The notes under the pieces were generated by a model that did not search any database, was not told the DNA's origin, and saw nothing but the letters and a program-made list of their open reading frames with translations. A program made the position numbers and the translations under genes. Shown here in pieces: positions 9,838 to 50,499 of a stretch of DNA of 64,000 bases. The stretch's first letter is position 1; the number at the start of each line of letters is the position of its first letter. The stretch is from Orbicella franksi (taxonomy: Eukaryota): assembly GCA_964199315.1 (NCBI GenBank), contig OZ116708.1, forward strand, positions 6,448,001 to 6,512,000. Reading direction: 5' to 3'.

Positions 9838-9928
9838 AGGAAACTGATTTCGTGCCACTAGAATATTGGGAATATTGTGAATGCTATCGTGTATTCACAA
9901 TATTCTAGTGGCGCGAAATCAGATTCCT
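9838..9928. mobile_element. Short palindromic MITE with TTAA TSD (Kolobok/piggyBac-like)
   Basis: ttaa|aggaaactgatttcgtgccactagaatattg...caatattctagtggcgcgaaatcagattcct|ttaa. Confidence 0.65.
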
Positions 9929-11086: not shown

Positions 11087-11480
11087 CCACGTTATGCAGT
11101 CCACCTTGTTTACTGGTGACAAACACATCGGACATTGTTGCCATTAACTACACAACTGCAGCTGCTCATTCTATTATCTCGGGTCTAACCAGAGCTGTTG
11201 CCATAGATGTCCATTTTAGCTTGGGTTACATATTTTGGAGTGATGTAACAGAACAAAACATCAAACGCTTCCACATTGACGTAGCAAGCACGACGACAAT
11301 TGTCACTGGCATTGGAGTTTGTGATGGACTGGCGGTAGATTGGAGGACATCACAGCTGTACTGGACTGATACGACAAATGACAAAATATCGATATCAGAT
11401 CTTAATGGCAATAACCAACGCAGCCTCGTTTCCTCGGAACTGGAGGAACCCAGAGCAATAGCTCTGGACCTCGATAATGG
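11087..11480 (+). CDS. Gene B: YWTD propeller 1, first half
   Basis: IFWSD, CDGLAVDW, LYWTD, EPRAIALD; ttcttag acceptor, gtatgc donor. Confidence 0.9.
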
Positions 11481-11912
11481 GTATGCATTATTGTTATTAA
11501 TGTATCTTTTTAGAATTTATTTCTGGTTACAGAAGCTAAGATTTTTCTCGAACTAACAAACTTATGTCACTCCGCTCAATCACTTAAGAATCGGTAACTC
11601 GAATATCCTAAATTTATACAAGGGCGTGATTTCCTTTACCTTAGATGTAATAGGGTTATAAAAGATATGGTTATTTACTGATTTTAGGGGAAAAAAATAC
11701 AACACGTTGCTTTACCTGGATTATCTATGTTTTACAATTCTTTCCTTCGTTAAGCAATAACGAATTGCATATGTAGGATCATGATTATTGGTTCAACTTC
11801 TCTGGACATATTGATACGGAGTGAAATTTGTGTTCCTTCGCTGTTCTCGTATCATTCAGGACAATTGGAGGTGTGAGTTATATTTAGGGAATCTTTTGCT
11901 GACATGCAATTA

Positions 11913-11947
<35 letters not shown>

Positions 11948-12822
11948 CTTTCATTGAGGTTAATGATCTGGACTGACTGGGGAGTTAACCCTAAGATTGA
12001 AAGAGCTTCACTAACTGGAAATCAAAGGCTCGCCATTGTAACAACAGATCTTTCCTGGCCTAATGGTATTGACCTCGACAAAGGAAACAAACGAATATTT
12101 TGGGTGGATGCGGGAACTGACAAGGTCGAATCGGTCGATTACAATGGCAACGACAGAAAATTACTTTTTCAACAGAGTGGCTTACATCCGTTTGCAGTTG
12201 CATTAATTCCCCCTTTCTTATTTTTCACGGATTGGAATACGTATGACGAGTTTCACCAACTGGACGCCTCGACTGGGGAAGTGCTTCGAAGTTATAGCAT
12301 CAATGATGGGCAGCCTATGGGCATCGTACCGTACGACAGCTCACGACAACCAGCTGGTATTTAAAAGGAAATTTCATGTCATGAAAAGAGCTCGTCTATT
12401 TTGCAGTGATTGATAAACTGTCTGTCTGCCTGCCTGACCACCTGACTGACTGACTGACAGACTGACGGACTGACTGACTAATTCAGTGATTCGTTGATTG
12501 GATCGATTATATTGAAGTGATCGATAAACGGCCTGCCTGCCAGACTGACTGCCAGACTGACTGCCAGACTGACTGACTGACTGACTGACTGACGGACTGA
12601 CTAATTCACTGATTTGTTGATTGGGTCGATTATTTTGAAGTGATTGATAAACTGCCTGCCTGCCTGCCTGTCTGCCTGAATGACTGACTGACTGACTGAT
12701 TGACTATTTCACTGATTCGTTGATTGGGTCGATTGATTGATTTTTTGAATGACTGTTTGATTGATTGATTGATTGATTGATTAATTGATTAAATGATCGA
12801 TCGATCGATGAATATCAAGTTT

Positions 12823-12855
<33 letters not shown>

Positions 12856-12989
12856 GAATGGATGGATGGATGGATGGATTGTTTGTTTGGTTGGTTGGCT
12901 GGTTGGTTGTATATATTGATTGATTGACTGATCGATTAACTGATTGATTGATTAATTGACTGATTGATTGATTGATTGATTGATTGATC

Positions 12990-13026
<37 letters not shown>

Positions 13027-16000
13027 GGAAGGTGTATGCAAAAGCGCCAGGGTAACTCGCTTACGAGAGCTTAAACCATATTGAATCGAAATTTTGCCTC
13101 ATTAGCAGTATGATAATTTTAAGACATTTAAGGTCGTCTCTTTTAAGACATTTAAGGTCGTCTCTTTTAAGACTGATAGGGTACAGTGCATGTGCATTTT
13201 TTCTTTAAATTTTTGAATGCTTTATTCATGGGACGAGCCAATTTCGAGAAATCATCCGGTACTTCCCATTGAGGAGTTTCCTGCTCTTGCACTACTCAAG
13301 ATTGCGGCAATGTTACAACCCCTTATTATCCAATTTTCGCTTTATTAACTGTCAAGCCGTCTCTGACGGGAGGTAAAAACAAAAGAAAATTCAAACTTCT
13401 AGCTATAAAAGTGGCCGCGGTCGCTTATAACAGGTGGTCGCTGACAAGTTCAGAAGTCCCAAATAGAATGATTTGACTTAAAAACTTTTGGTGTTTTGAA
13501 AAACTGGTCGCCGAGGAGAGGTTGTCGCTTACGAGAGGTGGTCGCAACCGTGTTGTCTTCAGCGAAAGGCTTTTTTTTTTTCTTTTTTTTTTTTTTTTCA
13601 CCTGTACAACGCAACTTCACTTATTATCATCCTCATAATAATATAGAAAGATAAATACATACGTAAACTTTTTACATTGTTTCTAGATTCTATGTGTTCT
13701 AGTTCAGGAGTATATCATGTGTGTTCTTGTAGGTGTACATTATAAGCGGGATCGAGTATCTTCTCTCTCTTGTTTTAGTTAAAAGCGCTGGCGCCGATGG
13801 TTCTGCTTTGGTGGTGCTGCCTTTGGTCTGCTTTGGTTCATCAGCAATTTCGTCAATTGCTATGCTTGTGTCTAGGTCTTAATTCACTTTCGTGCCTAAT
13901 AATGTCATTTTACCATGTACACTGTTGTGCTCACTAAGTTTATTAGTGCTCACGCCATGAGGAAGCCGGTATTACTGCGCGCCATTATGCTCGTTTACGT
14001 ACATTATGTGACAAACTTTCTTTTACATTGTGTTTCTTTGAAGCTTCAAGTCCTTGTGCTGTTAACAATGGTGGATGCAGCCATTTTTGTGTCGCAACAA
14101 AATCTGGTTATGAATGCATTTGTCCTACTGGTTTGGCAGTAAAGCAAGATAACAAGACCTGCGAAGACAGTAAGTCTACTGAAAAAAAGTGGAAGCATTG
14201 CGTCTGACGACGAAGAATATAGTTAGCGATTTTACTCCATGCTACCCAGTCTAAAAAACCGCAAATTAGATCGCAACTCGCACATTAATTCAGTTCAAAT
14301 GGAAACAATTGCTTTTCGTTGCCAAGCCGGGAACAAGGTCGACTTTTTTTATACAGAAACGTAACTCCTGAATTATCTTTAACTATATTATACCCGTGTA
14401 ACAAATTTAGTATGAGCTTCTATATAAGTTAAGCGAAATTTTCAACATTTTTTTTTAAACCAGACGTTTATTCATGTTGTACTGTCCTCAACCCGCCAAG
14501 TGTAGTTTTAAATACTTCTTTGTTAAAGGTCGCCTCAAACCCATAGTCTTCACTCTTCCTCTTGAGATCCAAAAATAAGTTTGCTCTAATGACTCCTTTG
14601 ACGAAAAAGGAGAAGAATATATTAGAGATTTTGACCCTGTCAGGAGCTGTACAATAAGTATTTCTACATCACCGAGAGAAAAAAGTCAAGCCGTCAAATC
14701 AAGGTATGTGTTTTCATTTACTTCTTGTAATTCTTATCGTAGAAGTGAAGAAGTTTATCATTTTTGCTGACGCCGACGCCAAATCGACGAATATTATTTC
14801 ACTGGATGTTAACTACTTTGTGGTACAAATTTTGTTTCGTCATCTTGGAAATCAACGCCCAATAGCTTTGGACTTTGACCCCGTTGAAGAACGTGTGTAC
14901 TGGTCAGACATAGCAGAAGGTCTCATAATTAGCGCTTTTTTCAATGCAACTGCTGTGAAAATTTTGTTTCGCTGTAACGTGAAGAGTCCTGAAGGCTTAG
15001 CCATTGACCACGTGGCAAGAAATATTTACTGGACTGATACAGGGACCAATAGGATTGAAGTGGCTCGGCTTCATGGAACAAGCAGGAAACTGCTCATCAA
15101 AGATGGACTTGATAAGCCAAGAGCGATAATTCTGGATGAGAGAAATGGGTAAGTTAATCGGATGCCGTAAAATTGGAAGGTCGTAAAGTAATTCTTTCAG
15201 CATTGTTCTTTCTGTGAGGTGAAATCAGCCGGCGTGACATACGATAAATATTCGTCCCAGCATTCTTTTCAAGATAACATAGCTAATAGCATTTGCTCAT
15301 AATAGTGCAGATACTGTATTATTTGAAGCGAAATTGGTTACTAAAATAGAACCTCGATTTAGTTTAGTTGATTTTGTTTTTTGGTCTTTGTTAATTAACA
15401 CCACTTTTTGCTCTTTCACGTGATTTTGTACTTTTATTAATTGTCACTTGTAATTACGTAACCACTAGCACCTTAATCTTATTTAAAGCTCGTTTTTATT
15501 CAAAAATTGTAATAAATGAAGGTCTCTGACCGAAACGTTTTTTACTAAATTTTTTAATCTATTTTACGTCAGAAGTTGTCCGTCCTCACAATTTTTTAAC
15601 TTTCTATGTATGTATGTATGTATGTATGTATGTATGTATGTATGTATGTATGTATGTATGTATGTATATACGTTTTTTTTTCTTTCAGCTCGTAACCACT
15701 CCCAGACAGAATAATCTTAGCGAATTCAAAAAAAAAAACTTTCCTGCTAGGTTTTCGCCTTGATTCGGGCGAAGCCCGAATCCAGGCTAAGCACACAGCG
15801 ACCTTAAACCAGGGAGGGCTCCGTCAAGGCCAGGCTGGGCACATGGCCCAATGACTGGTCTATCTGCTGGGGGCTTGCTGGGGACCAGCTGTCAAAAGCA
15901 GGCGGGGGAGGGTGTCTTGTACTGACACCCCCAACTAGCTAGAATTTGGGTTTTCAGTGTTAAATAAGATTGTAATTGACTGTGTTTCTGGGTATTTTAC

Positions 16001-17016
16001 TCAGTTGTTTGACCTTTTTTGAGGCTTCTGTGTTGACATGGCACTCTGCTAGAGTGGTCCATGCCACGTGCATGCGTGTGGGGCCAATCTCCTAGCCAGG
16101 GGGGTTGTCAGAGGACTTCTGGCCGCTGGAACTGTCTCTGAGTCAATGCGGGCATGTTTTTGCGAATTCGGTTAGATCTATTTTTTCACCCTAATTGAAT
16201 GATACCACTACTTCAATATTTAAAATCAGCCATCAGCCGATCGATAATTTGTCCAAGGAGGAAAAGCTTTTCATACTTAGGCATTCATTCAACTCGGATA
16301 TCGATGGATGTATTAACCTCTTGTATTGCTGCGCGCCCCTTGTGTTCTTGCCTTATTCCGTGTTCAATCACAAAATGTTTCCGTACTCTTTGACGCTTTC
16401 AGCACGATGTACTGGACAGATTGGGGCGCCAGTCCAAAGATCGAGATGGCGGGGATGGATGGTTCAGCGAGACTAGCCATTGTAACTGGAAACCTTGTTT
16501 GGCCAAATGGACTTACTATCGACCAAACGACAAACCGTCTCTTCTGGGCTGATGCCAAACTAAACAAAATTGAGACATCAGACCTTACTGGAGGAAATCG
16601 ACAGCTTATATTGTCATCTGGGAACAACATCCATCCTTTTGGCCTAGTTGTGTACAACAGCATGCTGTAGTGGACCGATTGGAATATCTTGAGCGTTTCA
16701 AGCTTCAATTTAGCCAGTGGAAATCAGGATGTGATGGTAACTGGCCTGCAACTGCCGACCGACATTCACGTGTTTGATCCTTCCCTAATATTTTCAGGTT
16801 AATTATTGGATTGCTTAGTCTTTAAACTATTAACAGTACATAGTATATGAACCTAAAATGATTGCTTTCTTTTTGCTAATGTCATTTAAGAGTTGCTATG
16901 CACTAGTGTAAAACTTTTTTTAGCTTTTATAATTACCTGACATCAGGAAAGTTAGAAAAGCAAATGACAAAATACAAAGGATCCAAAAATCCACCTGTTT
17001 CTTGTTCTGTCTGTTT

Positions 17017-17052
<36 letters not shown>

Positions 17053-20000
17053 TTTTCTGAATCGAAAGTTACACAGATAATACATTTCTGAATTTTTCTA
17101 CCATCGCGGATGAACATATCTATCTGGTATGTTGCTTTACGTTCAGAGACGCAGACTCTAATAGATCAGCGTCAAAGACATTGCAATTGTAACATAAGTC
17201 CGAGGCTCTCAAGACTAAGCTCTAAATTTTCCACTTCTTCATTGCATTCAGATCTCCTCTGGTAAAAAGGGGAGTTTAAAGGGTTTTTTTTTTTTGGTTC
17301 TCTGGGACCTTGAAGTCTTGTTAGAAGACTGAGATATTGAACGTTGACTATTGCATCGCTTAATTTCTATGTCATTAGGACCCCATAATTGTTCTCAAGA
17401 CAATGGTTTATGCAGCTATTTGTGTCTTCTAAAGCCAGGGGGATTTCAGTGCGCATGTCCAACGGGTATTGCACTCAAGCCGGATGGGAAAAACTGTGAT
17501 TATGGTAAGGATGCTCAAGTGTTTCCGCAATGAGTTACTTTTTGTGTTCCCCTACATTTGTGCTAAGTTTGAGCGAAATCGATGATTTGAGCTGCGTCAC
17601 CACCTGTATTTTTTCTGCTTGGTTTTCTTATGGACACATTCTGAAACATCCTAGACTATCTAATGCGACAGATATTCCATGATTTCTTTACTGATCACAC
17701 CTTTTTTCTTTTCTTTTTTTTTTTTTTTTTTTTTTGGCTTTGTTTTTCCCCCATTAACTCCAAGGTTTGTTTTATAAGAGAGGCTCTGAAAAATTTATGA
17801 TCTTCGCTGAAGCCGATTCCGGAGAAATTTACATGGTTCCTCTCGCGGTAGAGGAAAATCCTTGCCTTCCCCTCGAAATCAACACAAACATCTCAAGACC
17901 GGTGGCAGTTGATTACGATCCAGTGGAAGGAAAGATTTATTGGACAGATGTTACCTTAAAACTGGTGGCTAGGGCCTTCCCCAACGGGTTTTCGGTGGAA
18001 ATCATTGCGCATAATAATGTGGAGACACCTGATGGGCTGGCATTGGATTATGAGGGAAGAAATATTTACTGGACTGATGCAGGGACAAGTAAAGTTGAAG
18101 TAGCGCGATTAGATGGGTCATTCAGAAAGAGCCTTATCACATCAAACATTGACAAGCCAAGAGCTTTAATCCTTCATCTGGTAGAGAGGTAATTCGGAGA
18201 TGCAGAGTTCTAACTGATTGCTTTTAGTCCATGTTATATTGACTATCATCTAAAATGAGCTCACTGCGTAATCTGGTGCAAAAGCTGCAGCATTTGGGAT
18301 AAGTATGTTGAACGTTATTATAGAGACACGAGGTTGTTCAGGCTGGAAGATAAACCACTCGTAAAATACATACGCAACTAGTTATATAACATCTTTCCTC
18401 CAGGTAGTTTCTCTCTGTAAACTTTCTTCAACTCACATATCATGACGGTGTTTGTTAAGTCGTTTGCAAAAAAAAAAGGACTACCCAACCAATCATATTC
18501 GAGTTGTTTTAATTATCAAAATGTCAAATTTTATCCTTCTAAGTTAATTAAATAATCGATTTTGTCACTTATTTTCTTAAGTCTTTTGGACCTTTATCAT
18601 GTTAATCTTTTCGCAGATTTTCTTAATTAACGTCATAATGCGCGAAGTCGTTTAGACAGAAATCACTACAAAGTCATTAAAATCCCAGGGAAAAAAAATC
18701 AAAATACAAATCCAGTATCCTGTTTATTTATGAAAAATTTGTTATTTAGAAAGATGTACTGGAGTGACTGGGGATCATCACCAAAAATTGAACAAGCCAA
18801 CATGGACGGTTCCGCCAGGACAGTTCTCGTTAGCTCCGGACTTGTGTGGGTAAATTCACTAGCCCTGGATTTCGAAAACAGACTGTTGTATTGGTGTGAT
18901 GCTAGCCTTGATCAAATAGAAAGAGTTGACTTCCAGGGAAACAACCGAGTGCTCATACTTGATTTATCAGCTGATAACCTGCATCCGTTTGGACTGGCCC
19001 TAACTGACAACGTTCTGTACTGGTCTGACTGGAACAACCAAAGTGTCCACAAATACAATATGACCTCCTCTCTCAGTGAAGTATTGGTTCAGGGAATGGG
19101 AAGGCCAATGGAATTGCATATTTATGATAAGACAAAAATCTTTAACGGTAAGCCAGCATCGATTTGATAAAATGTACATTCCCTGGGTGTCCTCCCGGGG
19201 GTCAAGCGCTGAACTGTACAGGTAGAACGAAGTGAGTTGGTGCCCATTGACAGTTCACAAAGTATGTTTTGTTAAATTGTTTGTTCATTTATTAGATGAA
19301 CAAAATACGAGAAACGTTTTGGAAGTGTTATCTACCAAGTCTCTCTTTAGGTTAAGTCCTCACGCTCATTTCAAACTTATGAAACTAAAACAAAAGTGCC
19401 TAAGTAATAACCTACTGTAATTATACGCGACTTTCATTGCTACTACAGCGTGTTGTGTGTACGTACTGCCTCGCAACTCTTCTTACCCAGTCGTGAATTT
19501 TTTTGTCCAGTGTACGTTTCAGGCTTCAATGTCTGTTTCAATCTGTATTTACGGTTCTAACAATCTTATATCTTCCACGTTCTAGAGTTAAGCGATACAT
19601 TTGGAGGAGAGTGTGGAAGACATTCCGTCTTTACTCGCGTCTTCCTTTTGAACTTTGAAAGAAAAAAGAAAAAAACATAGGGACCATAGAATTAAAAGGA
19701 AAAAGGGCAAGTCCCGCTTTAGTCACGCGTTAAGTTCGTCGTGAAATATATGCATTTTTTAAACGCAAAGCCAAGACAAAAAAATAACAAGGTAGCTCTC
19801 TCTTATCTCATAGGGTCAACCAGCTGTTCTCAACTTAATGGACACTGCAGTCACATCTGTCTTCCAAATCCACAAGGACATCAATGCTTCTGTCCAGAAG
19901 GAATACTGCTGAAGTCTGATGACGCCCTCACTTGTGAAGGAGGTACTACTCCATGCTGACTGTCAAATGATGCTCGAATATTCCTGCGTGCAACTTTATT

Positions 20001-23000
20001 AAGCAGATTCAAACCAAGAATGGATGTTGAGTTTCATGGGCCATAAGTTTTCACTTTCAACCACTGTATAGTAAGACCAAAAGTAGAACATCTTGACTAA
20101 CGCACAGTTCTCTGCCAAGATCGGCTAAAAATCTCTAAAAAGCATTTTCCTTGAGTACATGTTCTAGGGTAGTACATACTAGTTACGCAGTGGTGTTGAG
20201 TGGAGCATGAATTCAATGTTTTAATTTTGTGAAATAGTGAACCGCTGCCCACAGCTTTCGGCACCACTCCACGGCAGTCTAGAGCCTTGTTCCAATTTGC
20301 CAGGAAAAACTTGTCACTTGTCCTGTGAAAGAGGATACATCCTGAATGGGTCACCAGCACGGACATGCAACAGCGATGGGACATGGACCGGCACTCAGAC
20401 TCAGTGTAATGGTGAGTGTGCTATTGTCCCTTGATAAAAAATACAAGAAATAAATGAGAAAAACTCGATTATGCGAATGAGCAAGATATATGTGCGCCAT
20501 ATCTTTCCCCGTTGTTTTCTTTTGTTGTTGTTTTTGTTGTTGTTGCTTTTACGAAACTCCTCTCGTTACATTAATTTGAGAAAAGGGTGAAAGCCCGCTT
20601 CTCGACTAGTTTTGTTTAAAGCTAGAAAAATATTCTTTTTTTCACACGATTCTTGGCAAGCTACGTATATCGGAGACTATATCTATATTGAGTAGATGTT
20701 ACATAACAAGAAGTACCTAAACATGTATATCGCATCGTGAGTGTTAATATTACAATTTTATTGAAGCATGCTTTAATTGCAAGCAACGTAGCCTTACGTA
20801 TAGTCAATTAGACTACTGCTAATAAGCACCAACGACCAAAATATTCGTGCTATGGCTTTCAGCTGTTACATGTCCAGCTTTACCAGCACCGTCCAATGGC
20901 ATCAGGCAAAATTGCACAGGGACAGCAGTGGAGTATTACAATACAACCTGCCTCTTTGTCTGCCATCCTGGATATAATGCAGTCGGCTCCTCATCAAGAA
21001 AATGTCTTGAAAATGGAACCTGGAGTGGCCAAGAGTTCGTTTGCCAAGGTAAAAATATTTATAACCAGATTAAGCTTGCACTATTTTTTTTTTCTCAAAA
21101 GATCTAAACGCTTGACATTACATCATTGCATGCCATTAATATCATGTTTTTATCATGTACTAGTATTAATAAAACAAATTCGTACGTTATAATCAAAGCT
21201 GTCACCTGTGCGCCTTTGAGCATCCCTGCAAGAGCCATTCTGCTGACTGTGTCCTGTGGCAATACGTACGGATCAAACTGTGTCTTCGGCTGCCAAAGTG
21301 GATATGGCAGCCCTTACGGGAATGTTACTAGGACGTGCTTACAGTCTGGACAATGGAGTGGAAACGCGATCAACTTTACAGGTACCAGGCAGTATTCGTT
21401 TTAATGCACCATACACCGTCTAAAATACTACTCAGTAACTTCCATCTGAACTGCAACACGCTAGGGTTTTATCAACAACTTAGTGCAACTCAATATTCAA
21501 AGCTACTGATAACGAACACCATCGAAGAACTCCTTGGAAGGTTTCATCCGAATAACCAAAAAACAAACAAACAAACAAACAAACAAACAAACAAAAAAAC
21601 GGAAACGGTATAATGCTAGCTATGTGAGAGTCAACTGAAAGAGCGGCCTTGCTAAAAAGATCCCGTGGCATATAACATATAGTGAGTTGGAAGTTATTTC
21701 AGGACTTCACTACATCAATTGAAGTACTGGTAGCTACATCAATTTAAGTACTTGCTGTGATACTAAACCGATTGTTTAATGTTGTGTTCTTTCATATTTC
21801 AGATATGCTTCCTCCAACATTTGGCATCAAGTGCCCAGCAAGTCCATTGCTGGTATATGCAGAACGTGACATGTTTTCAGCAGAAGTAAACTGGACAGAA
21901 CCAGTTGCCACTGATAATTCAGGAATCATGCCTAGGGTGACGCCGAATTACCAACCGCCACAAAGACTCAGTCAGGGAACTCACGTGATCATATACACTG
22001 CAGAGGACCAATCAAAGAACAAAGCAACTTGTAGCTTCACTGGTAAAGTAAAAGGTGCGGATTAAACATACACGAAGTTTCATATATTTACTCTTGGTAA
22101 CATTTGTTTCAGCATATCTGTAATAGCAAATTGTTATATAGGATATAGCTTACAAAACGTGGCGTTGCATCTCACCATCTCCCCCACCCCCCCATCTCTG
22201 CACCAAAAAACACTGTTTTTAATATTTGTGGCTGCCTCGTCTTAAGTTTGTTCGTGATGTTAATACATTATTTTAACAGTTTGCTCTTTTCCGACGGGCA
22301 ATACAGTTCTATTTAAATGCTAACCATCAATTAAGTGGTCATCATTTTAATGTCAACAGTTATCAATTGCGCATCGCTGATGGTAGACCAAGGAAGTCCA
22401 CTGCGCATGAGCAGCTGCGGTAGTCATTTTGGGGTACAATGCAAGTTTTCTTGCATGATTGGTTATCGTTTGAATGGCTCGTCAACAGTCACCTGTGTTG
22501 CCCCTGGCAACAGACCCCCTGGATCATGGGATAACCCGCTGCCTATATGTCAAGGTAAGTTATACAGATGACAGCTTTCATATAATCAAGCGATCCCTTT
22601 TATCTTTACGCTCGGAATCATGCTCAATCGAGCTAAAATGTATTGGCAGTCATCAAGCTGAAACAACAACCATGATGAAACAACAGGGTATCCTTGTAAT
22701 ATTTGTTTGTTTAATTTTAATTGACAAGTTTGGCTCAATAGTTGATGTGCTGGACTCAGGAACTTGCATTTTGTGTGGTCTAAACAATGCATATTTAGCA
22801 ACTGATCTTTTCGTTTATCTGTAGCTATAACATGTACTTCTCTGCCTTCTCCATCTAATGGAGTTAAGACCGGCTGTACTCACATCGGATCAGAAACTTA
22901 TAATACTCATTGCAGTTTTACATGCAATGTTGGCTACACTCTGGTTGGTTCGCCGGCTAGGCGGTGCCTAGAAAATGGGACTTGGAGTGGAGACATGCCT

Positions 23001-26000
23001 TCTTGTCAAGGTAAGTAAAAATACAACCTTTACCATCAAAGGCTGTTAGTTATGCAGTTTTGAAAGCTGTAAAAACACCAGGCACAATGACTCACTTTGG
23101 TAGGAATATACCTGCTCCATTTCATGGTTAAACCTTTCTGTGGGCCTTTGCCGATTACGACTGATGGTTTCATAGTAGAGCAACAAGACAAATGAAAGGA
23201 AGATTAAACCAGAAACAGCTGCTTCTTTGCAGAATATTGGAAGTATGTCGGGAAAAACACAGGCTTGAAGAGTGTATTACATCAAGTTTAAAGTTCTTAA
23301 TCTCAGGAACAGTCTTAACACAAACATTACCTTAGCATTAACGCGTCAGAAGATTTTTATTTCTTTGTCCGTTTATTTAGTAATCAGTTGTGGCGCACTC
23401 ACTCCTCCAGCGCTTGGTGTCATTTCTCCACCTTCCTGCCTAGTTGGCAGTAATTATAGCCAGACATGTCAATATACTTGTGAAAGACTCGGATACGTTC
23501 TCAAGGGATCTTCTGTAAGAATGTGTGATACTAACGGACAGTGGACTGGGTCAAACGTAACACGTTGCAGAGGTAAAGTGACTTAGTTCAACCTAATGTA
23601 GACTGTTTGCTTATTTTCTTTCCTTCTACCTGCATTTCTTATTATCAGAATATTAATACGATGAACGTCTTGGCAATCATTTAGAGGAAGTACTGATCTA
23701 CTTCTGCCTTGTTAGAACTTAACCATCATTTTCCCTTATAATCACTGGTGTACTGGTCATCAACTCTTAATGCGTAGTCTTCGGTATTCTCAATTCTATT
23801 TCTTTTGTTTCGTTTTGATTTTATTTCAAAATGTAGAAGCTTTAACAATTTGTTTATTCATGGTGTTTGTCTCCCAGCAAACTGCTTGCTTTAAAAGGCT
23901 GTCTTTTTCATCGTTTGTAGATACTGCTCCTCCTTCATTTAATGACACCTGTCCTAACAATATGGTGTTCTATGCTGCTGAATGTTCGTCCAGCGGTTTA
24001 ATTACGTGGAATGAACCAGTGGCTACTGACAATTCTGGTCACGTGTCTATCAGCTACCCTACCATTCGTTCTCCTGCCAACCTTAGTATCGGTCTGTACA
24101 GTGTACTTTATTCTGCGATAGACAGCAGTGGAAACCAAGCTAACTGCACGTTTATAGTTCAGGTAGCAAGTAAGTCAATCCTCCTGTCATGAGGAAAATA
24201 CCATGATAAATAGATATATACTAAAGAGAGAAATGTTTGCAAGACTTAAATCACTTCTGATTATATCATATCCATAGTTTTATTTTAAAGATGCGGCTTT
24301 TCTCTAAAGACAGAACTGAACTTTTCTGATTCACAGGAAAGTCTTGTACTATTCTTCAAGCACCAATACACGGGGCCATAACTTCTCTTTCGTGTGGATT
24401 TTTATTTGGTTCCCTGGCTTCCTTCTCTTGTGATAAAGGATACCAAATGGCTGGGTCTCGACAGCGCTCGTGTAGAGCAGATGGAACATGGTCAGGCGAC
24501 ACAACCCTATGTAACAGTAAGTGACTGCTACCCACGTCTTTTTGATTTGCATACTTTGTGACGCAAAACGGAAATTTCGTGCAGCACTGTTATATCATTA
24601 TAGGACAGCATCACACTGGAATTGATTGCTCGCGACATTCAGTAACTTGTTGCTTCCATGCATAATACCTAATTGTATATTTTTGGATCGCTTCGGCAAA
24701 TCAGGCTCAATTAGTTTCCCGATAGCCTGAACCATGGCCTCACTAATCTCAACTGACATACCGCCGAAGCGTACCAAAAAGATACGATTGTATATGAGAA
24801 CCGTGTTGACGTATGCGAAGATACAAGAGTCGCTCGAACGATTACTGGATGTCGTTTTCCGTTATTTCCAGAATAACCAAGTGTAAGTGTTATCGGCTGA
24901 GGCTGATAATATTTGCAGTGACCTTGATAAGTCTGGATATCGCGAAAAATCGAACTTAGTAATTGTGTTAATACATATTGAACAAACATAAGTTTCATTC
25001 ACTGTTAGTGAAATCAATTTAGTTTGAAGGCTGAATGTCCACTTCATGCTAAAACGTTTCTGTTCAGCTGTTCGTGAAAATTATCCCCTTTATTTATTCT
25101 ACCTATTACGACTTTTTCCGTGGATTTTTTGGTGTTTTCCGCTTCTGCATTATCCACTTTATTTCTGCATTTCGTAAAAGGGAATGTGATCGAAACGAAA
25201 TCATCTTTGTAGCTGTGCGACCGCGCTTAACAAGTGACCAGTATCTAGAATTGTCTTAAGCCAACAGATTCTATGGAAACTGAGAGCCTACAGTGTAATA
25301 AGTATAGGTAATCGTATGAGTGCAAGTGCAATTAAAGACTTCCGCAACGACTGATATTTGAAAATTCTCTCAAACTTACACAAACCTTTAGGGGAGTGTA
25401 CTGTGAAAGAATTTACAAATATCACGAGTTGTGTAAATCCTGAATTGCTCGAACCTTCATACGATTACTCATTTATTATATGACTGCGAAAATCACAAAA
25501 GTTCACGCGTTAATTTGCACTGTGGTGCAAATTAAAAATAAACGACAAATTGGCCCGCTCTCTCTCGAGGAATGCACTTAGCGTTTCTATGCTGTTACTT
25601 TAAACATATACAAGTAAGATATCCTTGACCGTGCTTTGCTCCTTTATCAAGCACTGAAAGGAAAGAAAGCGAAACACGTGCCGCTAGCTATCAAACTTAA
25701 ACTCATTGAGCTTTATTAAGAAACAAAGCAACTTTTCCTTATTCCAACGTTATGTACAAGAGTCCCAGTTATCTTTCAAAATGGTTCATAGTTCGTGTTT
25801 GCTTTCTTCCAGTTGTTAGGTGTCCGACAATTACAGCGCCAACAGATGGAGTGATATTTCCTTATCCATGCACTTCGATCTCTGGTGTAAATTATGGAAC
25901 AGATTGCTTCTCTATGTGCAATGTTTCCGTTGGTCACCGACTGGAAGGTGCACAAAACGTATCCTGCCTCGAAAGTGGGTTTTGGAGTGCAGATACTACC

Positions 26001-27593
26001 AAGATAATATGTAGAGGTATCTAATCTAGATGTATTTTTGTACGTGGTGTATTTACCTGATAAACCAGAGAAATTGAACTTAATCATTTTCGTTATTTAG
26101 CTGTTTTGTGTTTCTCCGCGGTAGCAGGTGCACAAGACCATCTCTGACCAACCTGGTTGTTTTTTGTTTTTGTTTTTGTTTTATTTGTTTGTTTGTTTAT
26201 TTGTTTGTTTTTGTTTTTCCTGTTGATTCTTCAGCTCCACTATTCTCTAGTCTTTCTCTTCCTCTCGACCTTTTCTACACAAAATTGCCTTCATTTTATC
26301 TCTTGACCATCCAATTTCTGATTTCCATGCAACCTAGTGTCCTCAAAGTCATTCGTTTTCCTTATCTTCCATGTTTTGCAGACAAAGCAGGACTAGCTCT
26401 AAAGCACACTGAGATAGATAGTCCCTCCAAATACAACAAGATAGAGATCCACTTAGAGCATGCTCACGTTGCTGATCCATAATTTAACATTGATATCATC
26501 GGCCGTACTTATTGTGCTTGGTACATACTGTCCCTCACCAGATTTACCACACGAATCCTTAAATTTCATGCTGTATAGACACTTATCTTCTGCTTAAAAC
26601 GTATTTTATTTCTAATCGTGCAATGATATTTCTGCTGTTCTTTGGTATCCATTTAATTAGACTTCGTTATACTGCTATCTGAGTTGTCATTCAGTACAGC
26701 TAACCTTCGTGGTGACCTTTAATTCTCCTGCAAACCACCTATTATGCTAAGTGTTCTTCTTCTTGGTCCTCTCCATGTACATCCACTGACGTAATCAATA
26801 TACTCCTTATCTACTTTGCTCCTCGCAGCACACATTACAAGTTCGGTGCTTAACGAACACAGTCCATTTCGTTTGCACATTGGGGAACTCTATAGCATTA
26901 TCAGGCGTCTTATCAGTTATCTTATTGGCCGCAAAACCTTTCGTTAGCTTTAGTTCACCTTGCGTAATGAACTCACTGCCATTACTGATTATATTTGGAG
27001 CCTATTGATTTTCTCCAGAGCGTATTTGACTCCCCTTGTATCAAGCTTCTACAGGAGTGAGTGATATCGGCTCCCAACAAAACCCCCAATCATACAGAAC
27101 AAGTTCATCTAATAGATTTACACATAACTAATTCACTTCTGGAATCATCCTCTCCGCCAAGAGAGATTAGTTTCCAATAATCTTTCCAAACTACCACTTA
27201 ACAGATGTTCAACCTCCCAGTATTCAATGCCCACACGATGTGGAGATTCCCACAGAAACTGGACAACCATTTGCAAGCGCGACGTGGCAAGTACCAAACC
27301 CCACCGACAACTCTAACGAGTCCGTAAGCCTCAGTGGTTTGCTTCCGCCCCAAAAGTTGGATGTTGGCAATAAGCACATCACATACATAGCGACGGATTC
27401 AGCTGGGCTCATTGGAAGCTGTACATTTTCTATTTATGTCAGAGGTAGGATATGTTTTATCTTAAAGTCATCGAATTCCAATTCTAAACGTGCTCATCTT
27501 TTGGAGCTGTTGCTTTACCCATTTCAGCTCTAATAGCAGGAATCCACAAGATTGGATTAGAGTTTCGATTTCCAACTTTCCGTTCAAGTTCTC

Positions 27594-27626
<33 letters not shown>

Positions 27627-30600
27627 GAGAAAGCTATGCAGCCCCCACTTTTATGTGTCTCTTGATGTCACCCATTTACAAGGCGTAAAGCGATTAAGAG
27701 CTGAATATATTTTATTTATACGAGGTTCTTTTTACAGAATCCCAAGTGTTATATAGAAAAATCAAAAAATTTCCTCGCTACTCTTTACAGAAATTGTTCA
27801 TAACGTCAACAATTCTTATCTTCTCAACTCACTTAATAATTGTTCCCGCTTTCTTCTTTAAATTTTCTAGAAAATTAAGGATGACTCTTAGCATCTCAGC
27901 TGAATAACTTTGTAAATTGCATTATCTTATCAACGTCCTGATTTCAATTAAATAACAAAAATGCGGGTCATTGAGCTTGCTTCTAAATTGTAAGCACTTT
28001 AAGCGAATATAAGGGCTGTTTCTACCAGGCTAAGCTGTTGCTATTGTAACCATTTACGCGAAAAGATGTGCAAACCTTTTTTTACCAATGAATCGGTATT
28101 CTGTTTGAGATTTCTTACTGTAGAATGAACTGATTAAGAGTGATAGTATTGGTGCATCAATTTATAAGTTCTCAAAACAGCCGCAAACTGTTGTTAGGCC
28201 ACCTAAATCGTCTATATAACAAAATTCTCGGTTTTAGTTGGCTCTCCACGCACCTGACTGTCATTCAGTTGGCGTGCGATCGCGAAGATGCTCAATAACA
28301 GGTGCGTATCCAGTTACAACCTTTTGTAACTATATACCTGTGATTGGACGCTCCGACATCCACGCAACAATTAGCTAGGCGCGCTTTAAAGACTTCCTCC
28401 TCTACTGTTTGTAGCACTTCTTCATCTCAAAATTTGTTGCTGGTACCATTAATTAGTAATTAGACCACAGGCCGTAAATTCATTAAGAGATGGTGCTCGT
28501 AATTTCAAATGGGCCTTGCCAACGCCATTAGACCAGACCAATTATGATTTCTGGCTGCCATATTAATAACCCATTTTCAAAACATCATTTAAAACATTTT
28601 ATGGACATTTTTAAAGCCCTGGACCATTTAATATTTTATCATGTAAAGTTTTCAATGTCTTGTTTTAATTGTTAGACTTGCTCTAATGCTTTGCTTTTTT
28701 AAAATTTTAATGTGTCTCATATTTTATTTATTTATAATTTTTTTTATATATTACCGTTTTATATTTGAGAATCTTTCTATGTTATCGATTTTCAATAGTT
28801 CATCTTTTTATTCTGAAACTATTTATATGAGGGCCACTGGTTTCTCAGTTGCTAAGGTTATGTTGTACCCACAATAATTATAACTAACGTTAATTATCAT
28901 CATCATTATCATCATCATCATCATCAACATCATTTATATCATTATTATGTTCACAAACAGATCTTGAACCGCCTAAGATTGCAAACTGTCCCGATGACAT
29001 CCGCAAGACGTCTTCAACGAAGCTGACAAAGATGTTTTTGCCAGGAGTCACTGTCACAGATAATGTTGGCGTTCACTTATTTACAACAAGCAGACAAAAT
29101 GGAAGCGACTTCACATGGGGAGAGCACAACGTAACTTATACTGCATCAGATATAGCAGGAAATACTGCCAAGTGCCATTTCCAAGTCATTGTAACCGGTA
29201 GATACATATAAGTTATTGAACGTTATTTTGTTAAAGACAAAAAGACAAAAGACGAAAAGACAAAAAAAAAAAATAAATAAATAACAAACCCTTGGGAAAT
29301 ACCTGGCAAAAAATGCAAGGCTTGCGCGGGCGCTTAATCAAAAATTAAATTTTAGTAAATCGAGTAACTAGTTTTCATTTATCTTTACCTTTGTAAAAGA
29401 TTACACCTGTCCGGATTTACAACCACCTTTGAATGGAGCTAAGGCATGTGAGACGTGGCTAAAGGGCATGTTTTGCACCGTACACTGCAATGAAGGTTTT
29501 GGGTTCGTGGATCAACCAGAAGCACTGTATGTGTGTAGTCCTAAGGGAGCCTGGATAAATGCAGGGAAAGGAACGCCCAGTCTTCCCGACTGCTCAAGTA
29601 AGAGAAGGTGCTATGTTCTAAACGTGTTATTCTAAACAAACCTAATATGATGTGCGGCATTTTCCTCCCATTTTTTAGCACATTATCTTCGTTCAATTTG
29701 TACCAGTTTTAAGGTATAATTTCGTACCTTGCGTACTATAATGGTTTAATAAAAATATCATTATTTATATGTTTATTTTATGACAAGATAGTCTTGAATC
29801 CGAGTGTTTCGATTTGTTATTTATTGGTCTGGATTCAGCCATACGGACTGTTTCCATGGAAACGGTTATATATTTTTTTTGTTTTTTTGTTTTTGTTTGT
29901 TTGTTTTCGAAAGCCGGACAAATCAAAATTTGCCACTAGCCCAAGTGCCATATAATAAGCTACTTACCTAGCTTGCTCGAGCCGTTAAGTGAAATACTGG
30001 CCCTTGCTCGTTTTAGCACAGACCTCGGGCCAATATTTCCCAGAGAGGCTATTGCTCTCCGTTATTAAGAGGTAAATATCTTAATATTGCAGAGACTCAC
30101 ATGCCCAAAGAAGCCGTGGTAAATGGAGATGTACATTATTTAGTTGACAAGTGCGGCGGAGAGAGCGTGAACGAAGTCATCGCCGGCAACTTTATAGACC
30201 TTTTCAGCAACTCGCCGTTTGGTATGGCTGGAGGCTGCAATGGGAAGTGCACCATCGACAACGTGAGGGTTGAATGCGGAAACCAAACTGAGGCACGCCG
30301 GCGAAGAAAGGCAGCTGATGGCAAGCAAGCGTTTAAAATTCCCCTAACTGTGCATTTCTCTTTAAAAGTTCCGTTACCAAGCAACGCCCCCTTATTTGAC
30401 CTCAACCAGACCAGTCAACAAATATCAAATAACCTGCTCGAGGCATTGAACGAAACAGACCTGACTCTGGATATCAGCGGAGTTATTATAGTATATGATT
30501 TATCAAAGCCGCCAGTGTTTCGGCTTACCAGTCTTGTTTGTAGTGAAGGACAAGTCCAAAGAGGGACAAGATGCGGTAAGAAGTTTCCTTTTGCTTTTGA

Positions 30601-31315
30601 CGGTCTTCATTTTTGGTTTTAAATGTTCTATTACATCTAGGGAGAACTCTAACCTGTCTAACAAATAGTCTGTCTTTTAATACTGTCCAAGTTAAACTGT
30701 TCACTAACTAGTGTACATATATTTTTTTAAGAAAATAGGTCACCTGACTTTACAAAAATCAGAAAAATTAAATATTGTAGGTACCGTCTTGAAAGGCAAG
30801 ATAAGAATATACGGTGCACTTACCTTGCTCGCAGTTTAATAGCTTATTAATAGCTAATTGATAGTTAATTAACAACTTAGCAAATTTCTTGCCTTCGTTT
30901 TGCAGCATTTGCATTAGTATACAAGTAGAATTCTACTAATAGTAATTAGAACACAGATGCTGACACTACTTTGTTTTGTTTATTCTACTCTTTGTATTAG
31001 TGAACTGTCCGCTTGGGTATTTCTTTAACACCACTGGTTGCCAGGCATGCGCAGTGGATGAATACCAAGATCAAGAGGCCCAGACGTCATGTTTATCCTG
31101 TCCATCCGGTACAACTACATTTGGACAAACGGCATCAAAGTGGCACGAAAATTGTCAAGGTTACTTGAAAATGAAGCTTTAACTTGTTTTATTCTGTTAA
31201 ACAACACATCTCTTGGCTAGAGGCAATTTCAAATGCAAGGAAAACGTGATCGCATGATTTTAAGATATGAAACCAATAATTTTTTTACGATAACTACAGA
31301 AATTCTCGCGCGTTT

Positions 31316-31355
<40 letters not shown>

Positions 31356-32941
31356 GATTTATAATTCATGCGATGCGTCTACAAACGAGAGTGGATAGTT
31401 CGACAACTTGTTATCGTAAAAAACAAATTGATGTCAGTTTTTAATGCGTCTGTCCTTTTATTGACAATGAATTTCGTCATAACTTTGTCAAAGTAGTCTC
31501 CGGATCCACTTGGCTATCGCCTCGTGGATCCAGAGCTACTTTGACAATGTTATGACGAAATTCAAGATCAATAACAGGACAGACGCATGAAAAAACGACG
31601 TGAAATTGTTAAATTGCGTCATATTGCTGCATGACAATAAGAGGTTAGCACTAGCAGGCCTGTCAAGTCTTGAGTTGGGCGATGAAGTGTAAGTTTGCTC
31701 GCCGCGGAAGAATCCCATAATCTGTCGCCATTTAATTATTTTTGTTGACATGTTGACATTTCCTTTCAGAAATTCCCAGCCCTTCCAACCTTGAAGAACA
31801 AGGTTTATCCAAGCCAATTCTATATTCAATCATTGCAATAGGAATCTGCGTATTTATTGGACTGATTGGTCTCACCATCTTTTGTGTGCAGAAACACTGT
31901 GTGTAAGTTCTTTCATTACTAAATAAAAATGTACTTCACGAAAGCGTTAAGTTAAAAAATATGTCTATCCATCTATCTATTTTGTGGACAATTTCCTTCG
32001 ATCAGTTGGTGTTGGATCTAGATGGATCAGCTTCATTTTAAACAGAATGAGTTGAAAACGTTCCAGTGCCCCAAATCAATAAATTGTCTTAACCTGCTTA
32101 ATTCCTATGTTTTTACGGTATATAACTTTGCATAAGAGTAGGAGTAATTTTCCAACTGCAGTGATGCTTATGATTCGGGTTTATGGGTCACCCACACAAT
32201 AATAATGCAAATCTCAAAAAACAAACTAAATCTTGACATGAAATAGTGACACCACTCGTAGCCTCTTTAGAATCGATCCATTTAATAAGTTAACCATCCT
32301 CATCTTTATCAATTTACATTTATACGCTATATGCACATTATAGTGATTAAATTAACTTTTTTTTTTCAGGATTTAAACAATTTTTTACACGAGCGCGTTG
32401 AATATGAGATGCTAGATAGCCAACCAGGCGCGGAGCGTCGAGTTGGCTATAATCATCTCATATCCAACAAGCGCAAGTAGAATAATTGTTTAATTAAAAA
32501 CGCCACTAAAAAATAGCAGACTAGACTAGAATAACAATAACATTACCAAAAATCACTCGTGCACTTACCATTTTGGTAGAGCATGGTATAATGGCTCATA
32601 ACCCATGATGGCTAAGCCAATGAAATCTCTCGAATTGCATTATCTAATGATCCAGTTTTTGATAATTTTAATTATTTTATTTCTATAGTGCTGGCAAAAC
32701 AATGTCACGAAACGAAAGACGTACTTACCCGTACCCAGTGGATGACGATATGGGACGCAGCAATCCAACATATGCTGTTACTGAAACTATTCAAACGAAG
32801 GATCCATTTTCTATAGAAATCTGTGAATTTCAGAAGCGCGGTCTTTGTTTTGACAGTGTGAATTACCTTTCGCAAGATGATGCACAAGATGCAGCTGGAA
32901 ATGATTTCAGAAGACTTAATTTTAATCAGTCAGAGGTGTAG
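11087..32941 (+). CDS. Gene B: LRP-like (3x YWTD propeller-EGF) / Sushi-HYR-GCC chimeric type-I membrane receptor, one in-frame stop
   Basis: 26 exons with GT-AG boundaries and continuous phase (6500 nt, ~2165 codons); exons listed individually; TAG at 16668-16670. Confidence 0.9.
11959..12356 (+). CDS. Gene B: YWTD propeller 1, second half
   Basis: MIWTDWG-NPKIERASLTG, WPNGIDLD, IFWVDAG, HPFAVAL, FFTDW. Confidence 0.9.
12420..13030. repeat. Compound (GACT)/(GATT)/(ATCT)/(ATGG) microsatellite with a ~100-bp higher-order unit repeated about 3 times
   Basis: gactgactaattcactgattcgttgattgggtcgatt recurs near 12475, 12597 and 12700. Confidence 0.85.
14044..14169 (+). CDS. Gene B: EGF 1
   Basis: [38 protein letters not shown]. 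Confidence 0.9.
14743..15148 (+). CDS. Gene B: YWTD propeller 2, first half
   Basis: PIALDFDPVEERVYWSD, SPEGLAIDHVARNIYWTDTG. Confidence 0.9.
15605..15664. repeat. (TATG)n microsatellite
   Basis: Direct reading. Confidence 0.95.
16403..16797 (+). CDS. Gene B: YWTD propeller 2, second half, with premature TAG
   Basis: MYWTDWGASPKIE...HPFGLVVYNSML*WTDWNILSVS...PTDIHVFD; frame continues to a gttaat donor. Confidence 0.85.
17379..17504 (+). CDS. Gene B: EGF 2
   Basis: [36 protein letters not shown]. Confidence 0.9.
17765..18188 (+). CDS. Gene B: YWTD propeller 3, first half
   Basis: PVAVDYDPVEGKIYWTD, PDGLALDYEGRNIYWTDAG. Confidence 0.9.
18750..19147 (+). CDS. Gene B: YWTD propeller 3, second half
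   Basis: MYWSDWGSSPKIEQANMDG, LYWCDA, HPFGLAL, LYWSDW. Confidence 0.9.
19814..19942 (+). CDS. Gene B: EGF 3
   Basis: CSQLNGHCSHICLPNPQGHQCFCPEG...TCE. Confidence 0.9.
20238..20411 (+). CDS. Gene B: Sushi/CCP 1
   Basis: CPQLSAPLHG...CHLSCERGYILNGSPARTCNSDGTWTG...C; phase 1-1. Confidence 0.9.
20863..21048 (+). CDS. Gene B: Sushi 2
   Basis: CPALPAPSNG...CLFVCHPGY...[10 protein letters not shown]..FVC. Confidence 0.9.
21199..21381 (+). CDS. Gene B: Sushi 3 (last Cys replaced by Phe)
   Basis: CAPLSIP...CVFGCQSGY...TCLQSGQWSGNAINFT. Confidence 0.85.
21803..22054 (+). CDS. Gene B: HYR 1
   Basis: PPTFGIKCP...[13 protein letters not shown]...GTHVIIYTAEDQSKNKATCSF. Confidence 0.9.
22360..22554 (+). 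CDS. Gene B: Sushi 4
   Basis: CASL...CKFSCMIGYRLNGSSTVTC...WDNPLPIC. Confidence 0.9.
22825..23010 (+). CDS. Gene B: Sushi 5
   Basis: Not in ORF track: CTSLPSPSNGVKTGC...[32 protein letters not shown]. Confidence 0.9.
23381..23572 (+). CDS. Gene B: Sushi 6
   Basis: CGALTPPALG...CQYTCERLGYVLKGSSVRMCDTNGQWTG...C. Confidence 0.9.
23921..24169 (+). CDS. Gene B: HYR 2
   Basis: DTAPPSFNDTCP...TWNEPVATDNSG...YSAIDSSGNQANCTFIVQV. Confidence 0.9.
24337..24516 (+). CDS. Gene B: Sushi 7
   Basis: Not in ORF track: CTILQAPIHG...FSCDKGYQMAGSRQRSCRADGTWSGDTTLC. Confidence 0.9.
25813..26016 (+). CDS. Gene B: Sushi 8
   Basis: CPTITAPTDGVIFPYPC...CFSMC...SCLESGFWS...C. Confidence 0.9.
27205..27444 (+). CDS. 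Gene B: HYR 3
   Basis: DVQPPSIQCP...TWQVPNPTDNS...ITYIATDSAGLIGSCTF. Confidence 0.9.
28961..29197 (+). CDS. Gene B: HYR 4
   Basis: DLEPPKIANCPDDI...VTDNVG...FTWGEHNVTYTASDIAGNTAKCHF. Confidence 0.9.
29400..29597 (+). CDS. Gene B: Sushi 9 (SVEP1-type)
   Basis: CPDLQPPLNGAKACETW...FCTVHCNEGF...YVC...W...LPDC. Confidence 0.9.
30093..30575 (+). CDS. Gene B: ~160-aa module with basic furin-type site (SEA-like, inferred)
   Basis: HYLVDKC...CTIDNVRVEC...ARRRRKAA...LVCSEGQVQRGTRC; phase 1-1. Confidence 0.8.
31001..31159 (+). CDS. Gene B: GCC2/GCC3 (ephrin-receptor-like) Cys repeat
   Basis: NCPLGYFFNTTGCQACAVDEYQDQEAQTSCLSCPSGTTT...C. Confidence 0.9.
31290..31615. mobile_element. Non-autonomous element with an internal ~85-bp inverted repeat
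   Basis: Arms ~31423-31509 and ~31524-31610 (gcgtctgtcc...gaatttcgtcataac.ttgtcaaagtag / ctactttgacaatgttatgacgaaattc...ggacagacgc). Confidence 0.65.
31770..31902 (+). CDS. Gene B: transmembrane exon
   Basis: PILYSIIAIGICVFIGLIGLTIFCVQKHC; phase-2 gtaagt donor. Confidence 0.85.
32689..32941 (+). CDS. Gene B: cytoplasmic tail, last exon
   Basis: Phase-2 acceptor; contains NPTY (32762-32773); ends NQSEV-TAG. Confidence 0.8.
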
Positions 32942-44600: not shown

Positions 44601-45220
44601 CAATCTTACACTCGATGCACCCGTCACTGTTAGTCGTTCCACGTCGGAGGGTTGTCATTCCCTTGCCACATGTTTCGCAGCTGGCCTGGCCTTCCTTGTC
44701 TTGGTAGCTGCCTTTACCACATAGTTTACAATCGAGGCTGTTTTGGTCATGAAATGATCCGACAGAACAAAGCACTGAAAGTCAAAACAGGCGTTAACTG
44801 TTTGCATTATTACGGCAGCTCACATGACCAACCGTAAGTGCTTGAAAACAAAAATCTTTCCAAGGGTAAACATTACAATCAAGCTCATTAGATCTATAAA
44901 GGATGTTACAATTAAGCCAACGTAATTCTGGCCCAATCCTAACATATTTTCCAGGGTGTATTTCCACGGCGAGTTGTCGTAGTAGCCACTTGTGTTACAT
45001 TGGCAAAATAGTCGATGAAAAAATCAATAAAATTACCCACCAATTATGCAGCACGCATAATTAGGTTTATGTAACACGAGAAAGGGTCATTGTTAAGGAT
45101 ATCTAGTGGGCGGAGAACAATTGGCCTTACGGGTTGTATCAGATTCCTTTATAAAAGGTGTGAAGACATGATCATCGCAGTAATGCACGCAACTTAAGCA
45201 GTTGCGAAATTAAAGCCTGA

Positions 45221-45260
<40 letters not shown>

Positions 45261-50465: not shown

Positions 50466-50499
<34 letters not shown>

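Follow-up and report, generated by a model that had tools for sequence, protein, structure and literature searches.

We analysed 64 kb of the Orbicella franksi genome (the window; C11:6448001-6512000 of a 497-Mb genome, one continuous stretch without N) containing two modular genes that lie tail to tail, B on the + strand and C on the - strand, with 13 kb separating their last GCC exons. A preliminary description of this DNA had reported that B and C share a collinear block, HYR-Sushi-Sushi-HYR-HYR-Sushi-furin module-GCC, and attributed it to an ancient local inverted duplication. Modules were called by Pfam on both strands, where Ephrin_rec_like (PF07699) is the family formerly named GCC2_GCC3. 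Throughout, S denotes Sushi, H denotes HYR, a an atypical Sushi, X the 'furin module' of ~160 residues and G denotes GCC. Transmembrane (TM) stretches were located by hydropathy. We also mapped 284 kb around the window with hidden Markov models (HMMs) built from the window's own domains. This local HMM map resolved six genes: the C-type genes D (+), E (-), C (-) and Cp (-), and the B-type genes B (+) and Bp (+). Bp sits 80 kb downstream of B, and D is incomplete at the fetched edge.

Gene B combines a propeller-bearing head with a Sushi/HYR stalk and a short membrane-proximal end, and its atypical Sushi and X have no Pfam match.

11014..19956, +, head of three YWTD (LDL-receptor class B) propellers with an EGF exon after each (Pfam Ldl_recept_b on six exons, E 5e-15 to 4e-23)
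13947-14204, 17348-17530 and 19723-19956, +, EGF-like exons (read from translation)
20225..23583, +, upstream stalk of Sushi x3, HYR, Sushi x3 (local HMM map; Pfam HYR 21748-22062 and Sushi 23269-23583)
23716..29208, +, modules 1-5 of the block: HYR, Sushi, Sushi, HYR, HYR (Pfam, phase-1 splice sites, RNA-seq joints)
23716-24189, 27171-27530 and 28894-29208, +, Pfam HYR matches within modules 1-5
24330-24521 and 25710-26021, +, Pfam Sushi matches within modules 1-5
29400..29597, +, exon of the atypical Sushi a, first-unit type, NGAKACETW..MFC (compared stretch 29372-29632; RNA joints at both ends)
30093..30575, +, X in a single exon, SEA-like predicted fold, with the basic site RRRRK in the strand 2-3 loop (joints 29597|30093 and 30575|31001)
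31001..31160, +, exon of the single GCC (Pfam PF07699, E 2e-8; Ephrin_rec_like match 30964-31179)
31757..32938, +, predicted exon ends of the TM exon (ILYSIIAIGICVFIGLIGLTIFCV) and a cytoplasmic tail with NPTY, ending ..QSEV (translation, hydropathy)

All module exons of B are flanked by phase-1 introns. Poly-A RNA-seq splices B at 27444|28961, 29197|29400, 29597|30093 and 30575|31001, which are four of the predicted boundaries; the RNA runs matching the stretch carry the label coral metatranscriptomes. B, or a near-identical copy of it, is expressed. Its TM and tail are also kept in Bp.

Gene C is likewise built of module exons bounded by phase-1 introns, and runs on the opposite strand.

59631..64000, -, HYR, Sushi, Sushi, HYR, HYR and atypical Sushi of the first unit (Pfam, phase-1 sites, positional orthology with D, E and Cp)
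63760-63999, 60774-61118 and 60264-60605, -, Pfam HYR matches
63149-63505 and 62242-62580, -, Pfam Sushi matches
59631-59927, -, atypical Sushi (no Pfam match)
56454..58602, -, first X (X1) in two exons, 58363-58602 and 56454-56699, with a phase-1 intron after RRRRSAG (no Pfam match)
55933-56106, 55418-55630 and 54770-54964, -, three GCC (Pfam Ephrin_rec_like, E 1e-12 to 2e-13)
47632..54322, -, EGF arrays (~21-22), pentraxin at 49213-49884 and two further EGF (Pfam EGF/hEGF and Pentaxin)
44161..47233, -, membrane-proximal unit: atypical Sushi 2 at 46976-47233, X2 in a single exon with RSKR at 45962-46429, GCC at 44560-44781 and TM stretch at 44161-44367

The two large EGF exons of C hold 131 Cys, with Pfam EGF/hEGF matches on 52601-54322 and 51001-51942, and both halves of its split X are conserved in D, E and Cp. 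Beyond 64000, C runs on as Sushi3-HYR-Sushi3-HYR-Sushi2, preceded by a TSP1-cbEGF exon (L011:2752-3093, -). The Sushi3-HYR-Sushi3 looked for in the 5' part of C is present there, and the ~9 kb read upstream contain no propellers; nor was a VWA domain found in the ~9 kb read upstream of its first Sushi. Across D, E, C and Cp, the C-type layout reads SSH/SSSH/SSSH/SSHH a X GGG ... a ... G, and a TM stretch follows the last GCC in C, E and Cp. By blastn, the 3' end of C is not conserved at the DNA level with its paralogues. A second TSP1-cbEGF exon, at window 3676-4122 (-), is probably part of E, whose stalk lies before the window start, rather than of a separate gene A.

Similarity between B and C within the cluster

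The local HMM map lengthened the shared block from eight to 15 collinear modules, SSSH-SSSH-SSHH-a-X-G, in an order that is identical in B, Bp, C, D, E and Cp. Since this order includes two rare un-annotated modules, it is far beyond chance. The paralogy of B and C is real, at family level. Within the eight modules originally described, Pfam on both strands and the matching un-annotated a and X bore out the order, and splice-site reading, with RNA-seq at the four B junctions, bore out the phase-1 introns at domain boundaries. The reported identity of exon structure holds throughout apart from the first X of C, which has an extra phase-1 intron after the basic site where B's X is one exon. Translation and hydropathy confirmed that B goes from its single GCC straight to the TM, and C has the extra modules attributed to it: 2 more GCC, EGF arrays, pentraxin, EGF, a second atypical Sushi, a second X (RSKR) and GCC.

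That B and C are a specific duplicate pair is largely refuted. When all modules of the window were compared with one another, only a, X and GCC of B had the position-matched C module as their best match. Their local scores against C (a 141, X 79-89 with z=13, G 105) are each the top of their row. Scores against E were a 137, X 88 and G 113; B is thus equidistant from two C-type genes, C and E. Pairwise local scores fell on clean diagonals when C was compared with E or Cp and B with Bp, and formed no diagonal among the Sushi and HYR domains when B was compared with C. Position-matched closeness, expected of every domain in a duplicated block, thus holds for the last three modules (a, X and G), at family level only, and fails for the five N-terminal ones. 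The HYR and Sushi domains of B are no closer to their position-matched C counterparts than to other HYR and Sushi domains.

The HYR tree contains strongly supported positional groups within the C-type genes and within B and Bp, and the Sushi tree agrees with it. Approximately unbiased (AU) tests of positional B-C pairing returned p=0.30 and 0.10 for the two HYRs adjoining a, p=0.068 for the upstream HYR and, against pairing, p=0.0155 for the first HYR of the block, a value uncorrected for four tests. Permutation found no positional signal among the HYRs (P=0.71 for C, 0.375 for E). At the eight Sushi positions, the position-matched sum lay above the permutations (P=0.0135 for C, 0.0087 for E), a weak but real positional signal.

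We found that the end of the B block resembles the first of the two a-X-G units of C. B's X scores 89 (z=13) against the first X of C and 55 (z=5.8) against X2. Its atypical Sushi, whose best match is C 59631-59927, falls within a clade of X-associated Sushi domains (99/98*) and carries 'GAxxC[DE]xW', a motif that first-unit Sushi domains of corals and deuterostomes share and second-unit ones lack. The a-X-G of B is of first-unit (u1) type. The X modules of B and C are ~28% identical. By blastp, the C tail matched none of the other tails, that of B included, an empty result that possibly reflects a database problem.

Genome-wide searches using B's X and the N-half of C's X as queries (E<=0.001) revealed how many relatives each gene has. 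B-type X occurs at 18 loci, 17 of them on C11 at 6.15-8.27 Mb, with 47-100% identity, and the C-type X N-half at 21 loci, 14 of them on C11. The B-type query finds no C-type locus and the C-type query no B-type one. Besides B, at least 17 loci carry an X that resembles B's far more than C's does, and the X of C likewise has closer counterparts at no fewer than 13 C-type loci. DNA identity between Bp and B is 83-85% and extends through the introns. The B(+) C(-) unit recurs as the pair Bp(+) Cp(-) and in near-identical copies. Using window 23001-32000 and 63001-64000 as queries, we located the B-C pair four times on C11, at 6.47, 7.06, 7.41 and 7.50 Mb, with 93-100% nucleotide identity and irregular spacing. 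These four copies reflect either uncollapsed haplotypes or segmental duplication of very recent date accompanied by gene conversion. The fourth B copy is a mosaic, its 5' part 82-83%, its middle 93% and its 3' part 99% identical. In Cp (L017, window coordinates 138010-139639), the penultimate HYR is present in an extra copy and the last is broken by a stop between 138162 and 138166; Cp may be decaying, or a base call may be wrong.

Two alternatives bear on this cluster. The first is that it is an assembly artefact, with uncollapsed haplotypes inflating the copy number and paralogues being alleles. The four near-identical, irregularly spaced copies on one contig are what such an error would produce. 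However, B and C lie inside one continuous window without N, paralogues stand at 47-92% protein identity, far beyond allelic divergence, and RNA-seq reads splice B as predicted, so we regard this explanation as very improbable. The second follows the preliminary description, in which B and C are direct products of one local inverted duplication, after which B lost the GCC-EGF-pentraxin core and gained an LRP head here. It draws on the tail-to-tail arrangement at 13 kb and the common module order. In addition, the two subfamilies are concentrated together in 2 Mb of C11, so that the first B-type gene could plausibly have arisen locally. Yet E resembles B as closely as C does, each gene has many closer X relatives, and the HYR domains lack positional orthology by tree, AU test and permutation. 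Furthermore, because the B(+) C(-) unit was itself duplicated, the present inverted orientation is a property of the repeated unit and uninformative on the founding event. We consider a single local inverted duplication improbable: the blocks are homologous by descent and their split is old, as had been proposed, but their derivation from one such event is not supported.

The block in other species

To follow the block beyond this genome, we searched 1.84 billion representatives with a profile of the X N-half only (A3), because profiles of whole X combined with separate C-type half-exons (A1/A2) misaligned the halves. The profile matched 252 proteins. Long matches are named SVEP1 or SVEP1-like and come from Branchiostoma, Lytechinus, Diadema, Patiria, Ptychodera and a gastropod mollusc. 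All 30 of the long X proteins scanned have HYR and Ephrin_rec_like around X, most as S-H-H-a-X-G. By Pfam and local HMMs, a hemichordate protein, for example, reads VWA-G-S-S-S-H-H-a-X-G-G-G, and an amphioxus one VWA-...-H-H-a-X-G-G-G-EGF-pentraxin. Amphioxus and sea-urchin proteins have expanded stalks and a late 'a...G' unit. A second 'a...G' unit was found in two deuterostome proteins, P0056 and P0077; in P0077 and other deuterostome proteins (sea urchin, starfish, hemichordate) the TM follows directly past the last GCC, as in C, E and Cp. The core S-S-(S)-H-H-a-X-G is fixed across phyla, among amphioxus, echinoderm and hemichordate SVEP1-like proteins.

Measured against SVEP1/Polydom, C matches over most of its length. 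Like vertebrate and deuterostome SVEP1, it has the core Sushi-Sushi-(Sushi)-HYR-HYR-a-X-Ephrin_rec_like x3, an EGF array and a pentraxin, with the un-annotated X and its multibasic site at the matching position between Sushi 4 and GCC. The multibasic site past the last Cys of the X N-half is common to the coral and SVEP1-like proteins. C differs in its longer Sushi/HYR stalk and in having TSP1-cbEGF upstream, where SVEP1's VWA was not seen in ~9 kb. It also lacks the long C-terminal tail of ~28 Sushi found in the vertebrate form, terminating instead in a second a-X2-GCC and TM like the sea-urchin, starfish and hemichordate proteins. Since its tail consists of two EGF, one atypical Sushi, X2, GCC and TM, C is SVEP1-like rather than a canonical vertebrate-type SVEP1. 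B has the core Sushi-HYR-a-X-GCC without EGF array, pentraxin or VWA, and bears an LRP-type head in their stead; it is a chimera sharing only the SVEP1/Polydom core. With the LRP/LDL-receptor family it has in common YWTD propeller-EGF units and an NPxY tail motif, but the window shows no LDL-A ligand-binding repeats and the stalk is of SVEP1 type.

The Polydom family of Nematostella is expanded, and its members share a core Sushi-HYR-TKE motif; shorter Polydom-like proteins lack VWA, sometimes with TSR at an end (PMC12549020). Likened by description rather than by sequence, this core of the Polydom, Polydom-like and Polydom-related proteins is the block in B and C. The part of that paper available to us describes no LRP- or YWTD-headed member, X or SEA-like module or genomic clustering (PMC12549020).

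We found B-type genes outside this genome only in un-annotated assemblies and as one fragment from the coral Desmophyllum. Their X modules are graded in identity to B's (90, 63, 55, 49, 45, 38 and 34%, one of them being from Desmophyllum). Two contigs from other assemblies carry H-S-S-H-H-a-X-G around a single-exon X, and the most distant contig (L025/L027, X 34% identical) reads YWTD-EGF-S-S-H-S-S-S-H-S-S-H-H-a-X-G, the complete B-type layout. Its YWTD blades are 43% identical to the last propeller exon of B (E 1e-23). From this layout in a distant species it follows that the LRP head joined the stalk long before Orbicella, and that its recruitment was no local, recent event. The same species counts against one local inverted duplication of B and C, as does the absence of any C-type module within ~18 kb downstream of its B-type gene, a weak check made on the open reading frame (ORF) list only. 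Ldl_recept_b is present in none of the 30 long X proteins scanned from other phyla. The sea-urchin protein P0063 (46% identity over 65 residues) was rejected as a B-type orthologue, because the tree places it elsewhere and Pfam finds no LRP repeats in it. The B-type gene of another species (L026) contains the X exon twice (9914-10579 and 18684-19319); the ~8 kb that separate the two include reverse-transcriptase ORFs.

A tree of full-length X modules grouped coral X2 with sea-urchin X2 (97/91*), apart from X1 and the B type. B-type X formed a clade of its own (96/91*), including Desmophyllum and the other assemblies.

The X module and its predicted fold

We modelled X with AF2 from a 19-row alignment (A4), obtaining pLDDT 80.8 and pTM 0.76. 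The predicted topology is strand-helix-strand, a disordered loop (residues 62-81) that contains the basic site, strand-helix and three strands. Foldseek returned nothing from the PDB at E<=0.001. In an exhaustive VIA search, SEA domains were the top six matches (Z 7.4-8.8), among which are the following.

MUC16 SEA5: Z 8.8, root-mean-square deviation 2.8, 107 residues
Murine MUC16-like SEA: Z 8.5
Zebrafish Gpr126 373-506: Z 8.3
Protease SEA: Z 7.6
TMPRSS6 82-208: Z 7.4

Compared with SEA domains of MUC16, TMPRSS6 and airway trypsin-like protease and the furin-cleaved one of Gpr126/Adgrg6 (6v55), the X model has a similar beta-alpha-beta/beta-alpha-beta-type sandwich; the ferredoxin-like alpha/beta sandwich of ~120 residues is present in the predicted structure only. 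The cleavable loop of X is predicted to lie between strands 2 and 3, as in these SEA domains. In contrast, identity to SEA domains is 4-15%, amounting to no sequence similarity, and X carries four conserved Cys in the first half and is Cys-rich at its end. Pfam finds no SEA match in X, nor does X have the G/SVVV autoproteolysis motif; a basic convertase site, RR[KR]R, replaces GSVVV in the loop. Directly past the fourth Cys, RR[KR]R is kept in B-type, C-type, deuterostome and mollusc X.

A tentative reading, which we hold to be possible and short of an even chance, is that X is a SEA-fold domain whose autoproteolytic loop was replaced by a convertase site, present in SVEP1/Polydom since before the coral-deuterostome split. 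B-type proteins, in which X lies close to the membrane (a-X-GCC-TM) beneath the large LRP-type head, might then be two-chain receptors releasable by force or protease, of the Notch-HD, mucin or Gpr126 kind. We found no paper linking SVEP1 with a SEA domain in the literature searched. In human SVEP1, a furin cleavage site has been placed shortly before R997 in a 2026 paper (PMC13722417). If true, the SEA reading would account for this reported processing as well, and the SEA-like look of the conserved furin-site module offers a testable structural explanation for it.

Origin of the two gene types and local repeats

Together, these results make it probable that the shared block is the conserved SVEP1/Polydom core, and that B and C belong to two old, co-amplified subfamilies, the B type having arisen once from a C-type or SVEP1-like ancestor. 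The core would consist of Sushi-Sushi-(Sushi)-HYR-HYR, a special Sushi, a furin-cleavable SEA-like X and GCC/ephrin-receptor-like repeats. C-type genes would encode membrane-anchored SVEP1-like proteins (TSP1-EGF, Sushi/HYR stalk, a-X1-GCC3, ~21 EGF, pentraxin, a-X2-GCC-TM). B-type genes would encode chimeras with three LRP-type YWTD propellers on the same stalk, ending in a-X-GCC, TM and an NPxY tail. The B type may have originated once, long ago, by block duplication and fusion. Both types would then have multiplied by tandem and segmental duplication in the ~2-Mb cluster on C11, with the tail-to-tail B(+) C(-) pair being one such repeated unit. At the protein level, a proprotein convertase is predicted to cut the exposed RR[KR]R loop of X, and the SEA-like sandwich may keep both halves together, resulting in a two-chain ectodomain that in B would adjoin the membrane.

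Several observations weigh against this account. The HYR tree joins no B group to its positional C group and places three B HYRs together (88/86), and the Sushi tree lacks supported cross-type positional pairs while showing an intragenic B pair, S-11/S-7 (95/97*). Given this HYR group and Sushi pair within B, part of the collinearity could stem from parallel internal SSSH duplication or intragenic homogenisation. The X tree puts coral C-type X1 with deuterostome X1 (87/82) and not with the B type, and AU tests reject neither B-type with coral X1 (p=0.20) nor B-type with X2 (p=0.30). As for the fold, Foldseek hits on X are weak (E ~1e-3), several being to SEA-bearing proteins, and the SEA match of the model is moderate (Z ~8). 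Cleavage of X and the holding together of its halves are inferred for these proteins.

The groupings within B also speak for an explanation without block-level descent, in which symmetrical phase-1 Sushi, HYR and GCC exons were shuffled around a shared a-X-G and SSSH was amplified separately. The modules are all 1-1 exons, the kind that shuffles most readily, and deuterostome relatives have other upstream Sushi/HYR patterns. Nonetheless, SSSH-SSSH-SSHH-a-X-G is the same in both types and, as a full pattern, in the distant B-type gene, the position-matched scores for Sushi lie above the permutations (P ~0.01), and the S-S-(S)-H-H-a-X-G core does not vary among phyla. We judge exon shuffling unlikely as the source of the shared order.

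The duplication story is an ordinary one: the block is the SVEP1/Polydom family signature, and B and C are two members of a large coral cluster. SVEP1 matters medically, in coronary disease, glaucoma and lymphatic development. The cluster cleanly exemplifies how an old matrix/receptor family divided into two architectures that were amplified next to each other, and the LRP-headed B type, conserved across distant species, appears unstudied. At the domain level, the Sushi-HYR-TKE core was already known from the expanded sea-anemone family (PMC12549020).

Repeats occur in and between the two genes. A ~330-bp dispersed repeat at window 31280-31616, in the B intron past the GCC exon, has ~90% identical copies on many contigs and in part matches itself on the opposite strand. 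Directly upstream of the same GCC exon, window 30900-30941 shows an RNA-seq pile-up with loose ends and 'goes back' joints, which looks like a short repeat transcribed elsewhere. Between B and C, window 37441-38790 is a tandem array of a ~200-bp unit with copies 79-88% alike, and an inverted partial copy of the unit lies at 39139-39351, 350 bp beyond the array. Within the intron that splits X1 of C, window 57321-57476 (-) holds an ORF-like element beside (ACAGACAGACGG)-type microsatellites. The same element occurs twice in the corresponding X1 intron of E (L009) and is probably no exon but a repeat element.

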